From the sequence record PV754031.1: a DNA stretch of 64,000 nt; one strand, 5' to 3'. A program made the translations under genes and the position numbers. Shown in pieces: positions 9,174 through 61,591 of the stretch (positions within the stretch are counted from its first letter, which is position 1; every line of letters begins with the position of its first letter). The notes beneath the pieces were generated by a model, which worked only from the letters and a program-made list of their open reading frames with translations, did not search any database and was not told where the DNA came from.

Positions 9174-9195
9174 AGCCCTCCCTTCGGGGAGGGCT
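9174..9195 (+). terminator. intrinsic terminator (CCTCCC-TTCG-GGGAGG family)
   Basis: AGCCCTCCC-ttcg-GGGAGGGCT. Confidence 0.8.
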
Positions 9196-23828: not shown

Positions 23829-23873
23829 GCCCTCCCTTCGGGGAGGGCTATTGCACTAAATTTTATTTGAGAT
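23829..23873 (+). repeat. 45-bp exact direct repeat, copy 2 (terminator plus promoter upstream element)
   Basis: Identical to 9175-9219. Confidence 0.95.
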
Positions 23874-26886: not shown

Positions 26887-26906
26887 ACCCTCCCTTCGGG
26901 GAGGGT
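26887..26906 (+). terminator. intrinsic terminator
   Basis: ACCCTCCC-ttcg-GGGAGGGT followed by TTT. Confidence 0.85.
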
Positions 26907-26916
26907 TTTATTTATC

Positions 26917-48951: not shown

Positions 48952-49044
48952 AAAATAGTAAAAGAAATACACTATTCTATGTAGTTCCTTTACGATTGCT
49001 CTTTTATCTTAGTTTCAGTTTTGCTGAAGAAGTACCAATGAGAT

Positions 49045-49067
49045 ACCCTCCCCTGATCGGGGAGGGT
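49045..49067 (+). terminator. intrinsic terminator
   Basis: ACCCTCCCC-tgatc-GGGGAGGGT followed by TTTT. Confidence 0.85.
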
Positions 49068-49092
49068 TTTTGACATCTAAGAGGAAAATATA

Positions 49093-49478: not shown

Positions 49479-49600
49479 TATGTAAAGAATACCCAAATCG
49501 GGATCTCCCGGACTATCTCCCTTCAGCGTTCCCGTCCGCAAATGAAGGTGCCGCCGAGATCCCACCTATTGATAATGCCCTCCCTTCGGGGAGGGCTTTA
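49479..49600 (+). ncRNA. candidate rod-shaped small RNA
   Basis: TATG at 49479; 62% GC core; helices 49500-07/49556-63, 49520-25/49543-48, 49526-28/49537-39; terminator at 49577-96. Confidence 0.5.
49577..49596 (+). terminator. intrinsic terminator
   Basis: GCCCTCCC-ttcg-GGGAGGGC followed by TTTATTT. Confidence 0.85.
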
Positions 49601-55150: not shown

Positions 55151-55226
<76 letters not shown>

Positions 55227-55900: not shown

Positions 55901-56184
55901 AATAGACTCCTTTATTACAATGTAGCATAGATTCAGTTTTTTAACTGGAATTAAATGCCGATTTTGAAAAGGTGATAAAACCTTTTCTCATCTATAAATG
56001 AATTTATAATAGTAACAATGAATATAACCAGGGGTGGCAAACCCCTGGCATTTAGACACACTCTATAATAAGTTCTACCACCGAGTGTGTTTAGTGGATA
56101 GATTTAAGAATACTTTATTATAGTACTCTTACATAATATCATCGTGCCAGTATAATTATCTAAATAGTTATAAATATTATTATT

Positions 56185-57276: not shown

Positions 57277-57352
<76 letters not shown>

Positions 57353-58976: not shown

Positions 58977-59034
58977 ATTGTGCTTCAATACATAACATGT
59001 AATGCTAGGTATTTTATTACAACTTATTTTAAAT

Positions 59035-59487
59035 TCAACGTGGCCATTGTAAAGAAGTTATCTTATTACCATTAATGTAGACATCGGTCACTTCGCACCA
59101 ATCATTAATTCTGTGTTCAATAATTGGAACATCATTTCGGCCAGCCACTCCAATCATATTCCATTTAACATAAATATTCATTAGATCAATTGTTAATTTC
59201 TCTTTTATGAGTTTAGGAGAAATTAATTTAATATTATTAATGTTAAAGAAGTAATTATTAACTTCTTCTAAATATTCATTAGTATTAGTAGTACTAACTT
59301 TGCCTTCATGTTCAAGTGAGGATGGTTTATTCTGATTTACAATATTGCTCACTAGACTTCTTAAAACGGCACTTGCCCTACCAGCTTCGCGTCTTTTATA
59401 CTTATCATAGTCTTTTACATTAGCTGCAATTTTATCAAATTCTTTTTGGGCATAGATTAGCCCTGGTAAAAGTTCATTTTTGATCAT
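59035..59487 (-). CDS. hypothetical protein
   Basis: Minus-strand ORF upstream of the tRNA cluster. Confidence 0.75.
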   Translation of the reverse strand: MIKNELLPGLIYAQKEFDKIAANVKDYDKYKRREAGRASAVLRSLVSNIVNQNKPSSLEHEGKVSTTNTNEYLEEVNNYFFNINNIKLISPKLIKEKLTIDLMNIYVKWNMIGVAGRNDVPIIEHRINDWCEVTDVYINGNKITSLQWPR

Positions 59488-59544
59488 TTTATAATTACTC
59501 TATGTTGTTTATACATATTTTAATATACATACGTAAAAACAAAA

Positions 59545-59700
59545 TATAAAGCCTCCCCGAAGGGAGGCGATATATCGTCATTAATGCCCAGCAAAGAGTT
59601 TTACTCTCTGGGAGCCAGTTGGAAGGGGGACTGGCTCCGATTTATTATGACTAATGTAGAAACGAGGGGGAGGGATCATTTCTACATATCATTACATACT
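59545..59700 (-). ncRNA. candidate multi-hairpin small RNA with C-rich (anti-SD-like) loops
   Basis: Hairpins 59652-59687 (loop UCCCUCCCCC), 59611-59638 (loop CCCCCUUCCA) and 59587-59612; TATG at 59698-59695; terminator at 59551-68. Confidence 0.55.
59551..59568 (-). terminator. intrinsic terminator
   Basis: Minus strand GCCTCCC-ttcg-GGGAGGC followed by TTTATATTTT. Confidence 0.85.
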
Positions 59701-59707
59701 CAGTAAG

Positions 59708-61591
59708 TTATTCTTCAATACCAATGACCGTATTGCGTTCATTGGTGTTCTCTACGGTTGAACCACTTGGGAAGCTACTGACAGATGCTTGCATTAGTTT
59801 CAACATGTCGATAGCAAATACTCGATATGTAGATTCAACCTTAGCGTCGTCGTACGATGCATGAATGTTAAGAATGGCATTATCGGCCCTTTTAGCCAGC
59901 AGATATACATCCTCAAGAGCATCTTTATCTTTAATAGTGGATAGCTTATGTTTGTAGATATCCCCATTGACAGATAGGTCAGGATACTGGGCTACCCAAG
60001 TGTCCGCAATAGTCTTAGTGTTGTTAGACAGAACGTCAATGATAACGTTAGCTGCTTCCACAATACCGGTAGCATCAAGCAACTTAATCTTAGCACCAGC
60101 ATTATCTGGCCATTTGGGTTCTTGGAAGTTTGTCTTTACATTGGGTTTCCATTCAGCCAGAAGAGTAGCGACTTTCTTAGGGTCTTGCCAATCATTCCCT
60201 TTGAACAGATTAACCACGGGGGCTAGTATCTTACTGTTCTCATCCAGAACTTTCTGGTTGTGACGATCAGCTTTAGCTACAGCATTAGTGATATTGGCTT
60301 TTGCGGTCTTAGGATCATTAGACGCGAACGTCTCGTAACTCGATACTTTTACTTCGCCGGTTTTAAGCTTTGCTTCTGCCACCCATTTGGCATCACCATA
60401 GGTACTTTTCAGTGTAGCAATAGCTTTCTTCTTTTTATCAAGATTGATCTCAGGGCCAGAGTCGAAGATACTCTTAATGGTGTCGATAAGACCTTCATTT
60501 GAGACTTGTATAAAACCGGGAGTATTAATGATGGACTTCTCTACATACCCGCCACGAATAACTCGATTTATAAAACCATTAAGACCACTACCAGTTTCGG
60601 CCATATCTTTCATGATTTCTATATTTGTTTCACCAGCACTCTGGGCATTGTATAAATAATAAGAACCATCTTTAAATTTTAGTATAATCCAGTCATCTCC
60701 AGTTAGATATGAATCAATATTACTATCATTCATACTTTGGTATTTAATGAATTCTGGATTAGTACTTAGTACTTCTTCAATAAACTCTTCTAATGCCGCA
60801 GAATTATTAATAGCATCAACAGGTGGAATTTCACCATCAATGGGTTCAGTAGTTGGACCAGTAACAATGGCAGGTAACGGATCCTCCTCTACAATAACAG
60901 TTTCTTCCACTGGTAGAGCACCACATGAAGCATCAATTAGTTTATTAAAACTACTAATGATCTCACCAAGTGCTACAAGAACTGCTGGCTGTTCAACTTG
61001 TTCAACTTTAGCAATACCAGTTTCTGTAAATTCTTCAGTAATTCGGTTATAGACTTCCACTAATTGATTAGTAAGCTCTGCTACTTTTGGCAGAGTCTGC
61101 TTAGACAGAGGTTCAACTACAGTTGTATCTGCTTCAACAAAAATAGAATCATCTTCTTCTAAACGGCTAGTATTAGCTGAGCCAGCTGTGAAGTTATAAG
61201 GCATATCTTGAATTACTTCATTAATTTCAGATGCCTCCATATCTTCATTTAGACGACCACTATAAGTACGCATCATACCTTCTGCTTCTTTAATAGTGGA
61301 ATGCGCTAAGCGTCCCCAATCACCACGCATAATACCGCGCTCGGTAAGACCGCGTGCAGCTGAACCAAGATCAATAGGTTCTTCAATAAATGATTGTTCT
61401 TCAACCCACTCTTCATTACTGTAACATTCTTTTAGAATGGTTTTAAATTTAGTACTAAAGGGTTGTAGAATCTTTTTATCTACTTGTTCAACATTTGTTT
61501 TAAAGTGTTCTAGACTTGGTGTAGCTTTTGAAGATACTTTTTCAGTACCGCTATATAGCGTACGGTTTAGGAAGTTTAGCATTTTATTCAT
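59708..61591 (-). CDS. large head-associated protein (phiKZ gp303 position)
   Basis: 627 aa, acidic N-terminal half, S-N-E|GLIDTIKSIF junction typical of prohead-protease-processed head proteins; identity inferred from synteny. Confidence 0.7.
   Translation of the reverse strand: MNKMLNFLNRTLYSGTEKVSSKATPSLEHFKTNVEQVDKKILQPFSTKFKTILKECYSNEEWVEEQSFIEEPIDLGSAARGLTERGIMRGDWGRLAHSTIKEAEGMMRTYSGRLNEDMEASEINEVIQDMPYNFTAGSANTSRLEEDDSIFVEADTTVVEPLSKQTLPKVAELTNQLVEVYNRITEEFTETGIAKVEQVEQPAVLVALGEIISSFNKLIDASCGALPVEETVIVEEDPLPAIVTGPTTEPIDGEIPPVDAINNSAALEEFIEEVLSTNPEFIKYQSMNDSNIDSYLTGDDWIILKFKDGSYYLYNAQSAGETNIEIMKDMAETGSGLNGFINRVIRGGYVEKSIINTPGFIQVSNEGLIDTIKSIFDSGPEINLDKKKKAIATLKSTYGDAKWVAEAKLKTGEVKVSSYETFASNDPKTAKANITNAVAKADRHNQKVLDENSKILAPVVNLFKGNDWQDPKKVATLLAEWKPNVKTNFQEPKWPDNAGAKIKLLDATGIVEAANVIIDVLSNNTKTIADTWVAQYPDLSVNGDIYKHKLSTIKDKDALEDVYLLAKRADNAILNIHASYDDAKVESTYRVFAIDMLKLMQASVSSFPSGSTVENTNERNTVIGIEE

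Follow-up and report, generated by a model that had tools for sequence, protein, structure and literature searches.

A probable conserved small non-coding RNA with C/U-rich hairpin loops preceding the tRNA genes of Pseudomonas aeruginosa jumbo phages

Genomic context of the small RNA

The DNA analysed here (referred to as the window) is a stretch of 64,000 nt from sequence record PV754031.1 with a G+C content of 35%. Around the element under study, Pseudomonas phages kmuB, PaSz-1, and Bobae match the window with 100% identity and PA7 (Phikzvirus) with 99.8%; judged by sequence identity, the window is that of a PA7/kmuB-type Phikzvirus. Its minus strand carries, between the homologues of PHIKZ303 (5') and PHIKZ302 (3'), a candidate small RNA whose components are listed in Table 1. 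A stop codon, a TATG motif, three hairpins, and a terminator had been predicted for this strand from the sequence alone, and all of these elements were found. Genes for tRNA-Leu, Pro, Met, Asp, Asn, Asn, and Thr follow in this order 3' of the PHIKZ302 homologue. The gene for tRNA-Asn(GUU) is present twice (55151-55226 and 57277-57352, minus strand), with identical Rfam scores, the number of phage tRNAs being seven in all, and a TATG motif (58990-58993) is located about 17 nt 5' of tRNA-Leu. Ten-mers containing at least seven C residues are rare in the window (49 runs, both strands taken together), and the remaining C-rich 10-mer runs are nearly all terminator arms. A 40-aa ORF antisense to the small RNA (59584-59706, plus strand) is without support and most likely due to chance.

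Table 1. Positions of the small RNA, its structural elements, its promoter, and the flanking genes in the window
Feature	Position	Strand	Description
PHIKZ303 homologue (upstream gene)	59708..61591	-	627 aa; virion structural/head protein
TAA stop codon of PHIKZ303 homologue	59710-59708	-	read from the sequence
Promoter region of the small RNA	59686..59710	-	stop codon, AACTTAC, two TATG motifs
AACTTAC motif	59709-59703	-	at -24 to -18
First TATG	59698-59695	-	read from the sequence
Second TATG	59688-59685	-	G at 59685 is the predicted +1
Small RNA	59545..59685	-	141 nt; both boundaries inferred (G of TATG to U-tract)
Hairpin P1 (hairpin 1)	59656..59685	-	arms 59685-59676 / 59665-59656; loop UCCCUCCCCC 59675-59666
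Closing helix P2	59577..59651	-	GUCAU 59651-59647 with AUGAC 59581-59577; encloses P3 and P4
Hairpin P3 (hairpin 2)	59611..59638	-	9-bp stem 59638-59630 / 59619-59611; loop CCCCCUUCCA 59629-59620
Hairpin P4 (hairpin 3)	59592..59610	-	CAGAGAGU 59610-59603, loop AAA 59602-59600, ACUCUUUG 59599-59592
Intrinsic terminator	59535..59568	-	GCCUCCC 59568-59562, UUCG, GGGAGGC 59557-59551, tail UUUAUAUUUUGUUUUU; terminator scan
PHIKZ302 homologue (downstream gene)	59035..59487	-	150 aa; reached by terminator read-through

Correspondence to a published transcript of phiKZ

Over the RNA region, the window is 96% identical to positions 273984-274163 of phiKZ, and the order PHIKZ303 - RNA - PHIKZ302 - tRNA-Leu/Pro/Met, on the same strand, is common to both. 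Putzeys et al. (2024, microLife; PMC10914365) report a 141-nt primary transcript of phiKZ, TU237, which is located upstream of PHIKZ302 and has its 3' end at terminator T131. It was observed by ONT-cappable-seq (GSE231702), which captures primary 5' ends, and by northern blot, which also showed a longer read-through form; full-length transcripts were detected as well. In that article, TU237 is listed as a 5'UTR-residing ncRNA candidate "controlled by conditional termination", and a "regulatory function" is suggested for it. Locus, strand, and neighbours are shared with the window RNA, and the length of 141 nt fits the span from TATG to the U-tract. Judged by sequence comparison and by the published description, the window RNA is the orthologue of the phiKZ TU237/T131 transcript, its terminator corresponding to T131 (PMC10914365). 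The predicted existence of a discrete minus-strand RNA with a TATG promoter and a terminator of its own is thus borne out by the phiKZ orthologue and its northern blot, and the belief that the RNA was undescribed was mistaken, since the phiKZ transcript had already been published. The fold, the C-rich loops, and the conservation across genera are not accounted for in the accessible text of PMC10914365; with the transcript itself known from phiKZ since 2024, what appears to be new is its conservation in three genera, the covariation, the invariant loop, the presence as a single copy, and the noncoding nature. Neither a dRNA-seq study (PMC8244752) nor a Grad-seq study (PMC8545117) of phiKZ mentions the RNA, and a literature search found no paper on its function.

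The PA7 type differs from phiKZ by one base in loop 1 (CCCUCC vs CCUUCC), by a G-C pair in place of A-U in the neighbouring part of the stem, and by an extra upstream TATG.

Promoter, transcript ends, and terminator

In phiKZ, the consensus of late promoters of the non-virion RNA polymerase (nvRNAP) is TATG, with the G as +1, and middle promoters carry the motif AAanTTACc near position -24 (PMC4666361). At the promoter of the small RNA, both are found together: the AACTTAC motif resembles the middle-promoter element, and TATG is the late consensus. Of the two TATG motifs, the first, named in the original prediction, is present as described, but transcription most likely begins at the G of the second. 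Given the consensus position of +1 and the 141-nt distance from this G to the U-tract, the RNA most likely extends from 59685 to about 59545. Across Phikzvirus variants the corresponding distance is 141-143 nt, the phiKZ counterpart of the span being L002:4015-4155. Nucleotide +1 of the RNA already lies inside the stem of hairpin 1.

The promoter stretch TAACTTAC...TATGTAATGATATGTAGA is retained in PA7-type Phikzvirus, in the Pawinskivirus-like phages, and in PhiPA3; phiKZ proper has retained the second TATG alone, i.e., the one abutting hairpin 1. A recombination boundary is apparent at the promoter (window 59686-59720, minus strand; L002:3990-4015). Phages of the phiKZ type possess another C-terminus of gene 303 and another sequence up to the second TATG, while a TAACTTAC...TATGTAATGATATG stretch is common to PA7-type phages, Pawinskivirus-like phages, and PhiPA3. 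In T2P and PA7_Y12, gene 303 ends earlier, and a remnant of the old stop codon is retained.

Hfq-dependent sRNAs carry an uninterrupted U-tail behind the terminator hairpin. The U-tail following the terminator of the small RNA is interrupted, reading UUUAUAUUUU in Phikzvirus and UUUAUGUUG in the other genera. Terminators of the phage share a near-identical stem, GCCCUCCC-UUCG-GGGAGGGC, followed by UUUAU. Within the window, such terminators occur at 9176-9195, 23830-23849, 26888-26907, 49044-49068, 49578-49597, and further positions, several of them being bidirectional palindromes; they are also present in pieces L022-L025. The shared stems account for nearly all C-rich and G-rich 10-mers of the phage genome.

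Conservation across phage genera

Sequence comparison newly places the RNA at the same site in three genera (Phikzvirus, the Pawinskivirus-like group, and PhiPA3). In all Phikzvirus records it comes immediately behind the end of the PHIKZ303 homologue and opens the gene block that carries the tRNAs, and it is found at the same site in the Pawinskivirus-like phages PS119XW, BRkr, phiHQ, HPP-Temi, HHBS36_1, PA1C, and phiLBG22, which have genomes of about 300 kb, and in PhiPA3 (Miltoncavirus). The product of the upstream gene measures 627-646 aa in Phikzvirus, but about 250 aa in the Pawinskivirus-like phages and 233 aa in PhiPA3, and the replacement of the phiKZ-type C-terminus reaches as far as the TATG of the promoter. 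Since the upstream gene varies and is swapped while the RNA stays in place, the RNA is a module of its own.

This exchange of the upstream gene bears on the view that the element is a mere 3' UTR of the head-protein gene, composed of stabilising hairpins and a terminator without a function of their own. Such a view would suit the proximity of the start site to the stop codon (22 nt) and the fact that the RNA ends with the only terminator downstream of the head-protein gene. Nevertheless, the retention of the element next to upstream genes of such different length, the primary 5' end mapped for the small transcript (PMC10914365), and a conservation of the loops which exceeds the needs of stability make it very improbable.

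A covariance model (R1) scored the window RNA with 108.7 bits and detected exactly one copy per genome; a search for paralogues with this model, covering the window together with the remainder of the PA7 genome, did not reveal a second copy. The Phabio locus did not match the covariance model, and an IMG/VR scan anchored on the protein of the PHIKZ304 homologue yielded PA7 itself and nothing else. Scanning IMG/VR with the pattern of hairpin 2 yielded PA7 and PhiPA3 only, and the single match in JGI metagenomes (L020) was located in G+C-rich coding sequence and is attributed to chance. When the PhiPA3 version was compared with phages by BLAST, 201phi2-1, Phabio, Psa21, and Viktualia gave matches at the level of the terminator only. 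As far as these sequence searches reach, the RNA family is so far confined to P. aeruginosa jumbo phages.

Secondary structure and covariation

The minus strand folds with -60.1 kcal/mol (z = -6.7), a value reached by none of 200 shuffled sequences, and the fold of the plus strand is less good (z = -4.4). P3 and P4 are nested in P2, and a linker of 17 nt separates P1 from P3. Hairpin 1 as quoted in the original prediction extends from 59687 to 59654 (minus strand); its U-G wobble pair (U59678-G59663), claimed to be compatible with the minus strand only, was confirmed, and in relatives the G-U pairs of hairpins 2 and 3 likewise fit this strand alone. A reading of the plus strand as an RsmY/Z-like sponge with GGA in its loops was rejected, as the G-U pairs would turn into A-C mismatches, the plus strand lacks a terminator, and the published transcript (PMC10914365) is on the strand of PHIKZ302. 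A pairing of a 5' extension with GUCAU, considered as a possible switch, was likewise discarded, not being conserved outside Phikzvirus.

The comparison set consisted of ten distinct sequences from the three genera. Folded independently, all ten adopt the same architecture of P1, P2 around P3 and P4, a linker, and the terminator. In the MAFFT alignment, 95.5% of cells pair, as compared to 38-48% with the partners slid, five pairs are changed on both sides, and the covariation score was reached by 0 of 500 shuffles. MAFFT misplaces hairpin 1 in the PhiPA3 version. Alignment A3, which was fitted with the model, puts it right, but is biased to the given structure, and its higher values (96.9% of cells paired, nine pairs changed on both sides) share this bias. 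RNAalifold recovered P1, P3, P4, and the terminator unaided.

In P1, the ninth pair changes from G-C to A-U, the sixth occurs as A-U, G-U, or G-C, and the eighth as U-G, C-G, or U-A. P2 is present in the minimum-free-energy folds of all ten variants; its Phikzvirus version comprises 5 bp and is invariable, and its equivalent in the Pawinskivirus-like phages comprises 9-10 bp and shows compensatory changes (ACC/GGU, AUC/GAU, ACCG/CGGU). In P3, 100% of cells are paired, and two pairs are changed on both sides (G-C/A-U/C-G and U-A/C-G). P4 contains one pair varying as A-U/G-C/U-A and two varying as G-C/G-U. The covariation of the inner helix upholds hairpin 3 in part, the outer CCCAG/CUGGG helix being lost in PA7_Y12. 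Covariation thus backs hairpins 1 and 2 and the inner part of hairpin 3, and with ten related sequences it is to be taken as supportive, not as proof.

In the ensemble, the two C-rich loops remain 100% unpaired. The 8-nt motif CCCUUCCA in the P3 loop is invariant in all ten distinct sequences of the three genera, so that a conserved, accessible single-stranded seed is present. The P1 loop is always C/U-rich, but its sequence depends on the clade: UCCCUCCCCC in the window, UCCUUCCCCC in phiKZ, and UCACUCCU or CCUACUCCU in others, with AACCCUUCCA as a further loop among the relatives. The expectation that stems vary and loops are fixed therefore holds for hairpin 2, with its stem exchanges and constant motif, and for hairpin 1 only as regards the C/U-rich character of the loop. 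The linker of the Pawinskivirus-like phages carries a 45-nt insertion with further single-stranded CUCCUU motifs, and a shorter insertion in PhiPA3 also contains CUCCUU. Predicted lengths of the RNA are about 141 nt for the PA7 type, 180 nt for the Pawinskivirus-like phages, and 158 nt for PhiPA3. The 45-nt insertion (L003:3124-3170 and the same region of L004 and L008) carries CCCCUCCUUUC and UUUCUCCUUG; its CAGUUGGUAA stretch resembles a tRNA D-arm, although no tRNA is called there by ARAGORN or in the records.

The PA7 type contains a 32-aa ORF with AUG 59679-59677 as its start, for which ANB1 carries a hypothetical-protein annotation (L017:5912-6010); short CDSs are also annotated within this intergenic region, 3' of the conserved hairpins, in HPP-Temi (L008:4307-4414) and HHBS36_1 (L009:4315-4407). 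That the locus acts through a small protein is nonetheless hardly credible: the start codon is AUA in phiKZ, T2P, and 124.01, indels break the frame in the other genera, and the AUG lies inside the P1 stem and lacks a Shine-Dalgarno (SD) sequence. With the AUG lost in phiKZ and the frame not kept across genera, a coding role of this ORF was rejected, and the short CDS calls in the three phages are probably over-annotations. Taken as a whole, the element is very probably a genuine conserved small non-coding RNA.

Relation to known RNA families

The tandem C-rich hairpins had been likened to sRNAs of the cuckoo/AbcR type. Searching Rfam at gathering and at permissive thresholds did not assign the RNA to a family; there was only a sub-threshold echo of ar14, for which cmscan places both C-rich hairpins onto two ar14 hairpins with 19.9 bits, as compared to a gathering threshold of 58.8 (E = 0.05-0.09 in a search of 171-311 nt). 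Features in common with the cuckoo RNAs of alphaproteobacteria (alpha-r14 / RSs0680, RF02344) are tandem hairpins with variable stems and C-rich, anti-SD-like loops. Cuckoo RNAs are defined by CCUCCUCCC in every hairpin loop and by two to four directly adjacent hairpins of similar size (PMC4615179). In contrast, the phage loops UCCCUCCCCC and CCCCCUUCCA are unlike each other and lack CCUCCUCCC, the hairpins are not adjacent but separated by the linker, the second one being nested in the closing helix, the P4 loop is AAA, and the carrier is a phage of a gammaproteobacterium. AbcR / ar15 did not match in Rfam at E <= 10. Membership in the cuckoo/AbcR group, as originally proposed, is thus contradicted by the ar14 score, the missing AbcR match, and the absence of CCUCCUCCC; by analogy, there may at most be a likeness in action to cuckoo-type RNAs.

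The C-rich-loop sRNAs RsaE/RoxS and LhrC of Firmicutes occlude ribosome-binding sites. Like these and AbcR1/2, the phage RNA presents several redundant single-stranded C/U-rich sites on a small terminated RNA, but it has no sequence or Rfam relationship to them (none at E <= 10). The genes of RNAC and RNAD of phage T4 adjoin T4 tRNA genes, and both RNAs are processed from a tRNA precursor, whereas the window RNA has its own start site and terminator. RNAC and RNAD are small stable late phage RNAs whose function is still unknown (PMC9697503). Judged by description, they resemble the RNA studied here in being small, abundant, and structured, and together with the other ncRNA candidates of phiKZ they are its closest parallels among phages.

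Predicted interactions of the loops

The genes of the window use AGGA, GAGG, and AAGG as ribosome-binding motifs, which are enriched 7-9-fold upstream of start codons. Both loops are predicted to pair with phage ribosome-binding regions in preference to the interiors of genes (p = 1e-9 to 1e-18); however, the predicted duplexes are weak, their energies averaging about -4.4 kcal/mol and being -8 or lower in just 8-13%, and composition-matched shuffled loops pair equally well. The signal consequently reflects composition rather than a specific seed or the order of bases in the loop, and in terms of this modelling the loops bind G/A-rich RNA in a generic manner and are not tuned anti-SD sequences. 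The likeness of GAUCCCUCC in hairpin 1 to the tail of 16S rRNA, noted in the original prediction, is not conserved: AAUCCUUCC stands in its place in phiKZ, and UCACUCCU or CCUACUCCU in the other genera.

No specific complementary target conserved together with the seed was found beyond chance in about 267 kb of the phage genome. UGGAAGGG, the complement of the invariant 8-mer, occurs twice elsewhere in the PA7 genome, which is the level expected by chance, and neither site is located at a start codon. Complements of loop 1 in the window and the PA7 pieces are almost all 3' arms of terminators, because the phage terminators share the GCCCUCCC/GGGAGGGC stem, and do not exceed chance. Pairing with the seven phage tRNAs was no better than that of shuffles. 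As its sequence differs by clade, the P1 loop cannot read one fixed long target. In the Pawinskivirus-like phages, there is no ORF between the terminator and tRNA-Leu and hence no SD sequence in cis to mask, so that masking in cis cannot be the conserved role.

The failure to find an RNA target in the phage genome would be in keeping with a protein-binding or decoy RNA, whose loops titrate a host or phage factor for C-rich or anti-SD-like RNA and do not pair with mRNA at all. The invariant loop on a covarying stem would suit such a role, as would the P1 loops, which resemble the 16S tail by GAUC-CCUCC in the PA7 type and, differently, by UCAC-UCCU in the Pawinskivirus-like phages. This resemblance is not conserved (CCUUCC in phiKZ), the Grad-seq study of phiKZ infection (PMC8545117) does not include the RNA among its phage ncRNA candidates, and no candidate protein is known; the reading is purely inferential, and we regard it as unlikely. 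A multi-site mimic of the anti-SD tail, in which the loops and the CUCCUU stretches soak up G/A-rich sites or a factor binding the 16S tail, appears still less probable. Such an RNA would be made in quantity from mid-infection, the sites soaked up would be ribosome-binding or GGA-type regulatory sites, and translation would tilt globally towards phage messages with short AGGA/GAGG sites.

Possible function of the small RNA

C-rich-loop sRNAs of other bacteria pair with G/A-rich sites and lower the translation or the stability of their targets. By analogy, we tentatively propose that the element is an independently transcribed, structured ncRNA of about 141 nt which acts in trans through its C/U-rich loops, a statement which, taken as a whole, is somewhat more likely to fail than to hold. 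The phage non-virion RNA polymerase, on which expression of the phage tRNAs depends (PMC12571901), would start the RNA at the TATG just past the end of the head-protein gene; most transcripts would end at the strong intrinsic terminator, and a minority would continue into PHIKZ302 and the tRNA genes. The RNA would owe its stability to the 5'-terminal stem and the terminator. The loops, as the presumed working surface, would pair with short G/A-rich stretches (SD-like or GGA sites) of host or phage RNAs, thereby lowering translation or stability of the putative targets. Synthesis inside the phage nucleus counts against a role in trans, for which access to the cytoplasm would be needed.

A serious rival, and the main one, is that the element is a cis-acting leader or attenuator of the PHIKZ302-tRNA operon: the promoter would drive the tRNA cluster, the structured leader and its terminator would set or conditionally tune read-through, and the 141-nt RNA would be a terminated by-product. 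The terms used by Putzeys et al. (5'UTR-residing, "controlled by conditional termination"; PMC10914365) and their detection of full-length transcripts speak for attenuation, as does the position of the element at the head of a tRNA-containing gene block in all three genera; in the Pawinskivirus-like phages, the terminator is only about 35 nt 5' of tRNA-Leu, with no TATG in between. Moreover, the 3' arm of the terminator, GGGGAGG, could in principle pair with loop 1 (CCUCCCC) in competition with the 5' arm. However, this complementarity is strong in Phikzvirus only and reflects the stem common to all terminators of the phage, and among the ten folds no conserved alternative pairing was found that would provide mutually exclusive terminator and antiterminator structures. 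Riboswitch and leader families of Rfam did not match at gathering thresholds, the best being Phe_leader with 22 bits (threshold 55) on the wrong strand. Phikzvirus possesses further TATG motifs 3' of the terminator and directly before tRNA-Leu, so that the operon need not depend on read-through, and an invariant 8-nt loop above a stem that covaries points to a surface which is recognised rather than to a mere roadblock. On this evidence, attenuation is possible though doubtful.

To our knowledge, a function is established for very few ncRNAs of virulent phages, and for none of those from nucleus-forming jumbo phages. Being abundant in phiKZ and under structural selection in three genera, the RNA ranks among the better candidates for a jumbo-phage riboregulator, and its invariant loop can serve as a guide when infection data already available are searched for targets. 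Should the RNA act on ribosome-binding sites, or on a factor reading the 16S tail, it would add an RNA layer to the takeover of translation; should it do no more than attenuate the tRNA operon, it would be an ordinary leader.

Two ncRNA candidates of phiKZ, 3'UTR_PHIKZ298 and 5'UTR_gp40 (Gerovac et al. 2021, PMC8545117), stem from the same phage group and the same tRNA-rich region. 3'UTR_PHIKZ298 resembles the window RNA in starting after a TATG with a 5'-terminal hairpin and in ending at a terminator; both candidates, however, are unrelated to it in sequence and lack C-rich loops, and the covariance model does not hit 3'UTR_PHIKZ298. In the window, a structured intergenic RNA (56010-56140, minus strand) is located 3' of the PHIKZ298 homologue. 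It consists of three hairpins (z = -4.8) without C-rich loops, a TATG lies directly 5' of its first stem, and its last hairpin is terminator-like; it corresponds to the 3'UTR_PHIKZ298 candidate as described in PMC8545117 and PMC10914365.
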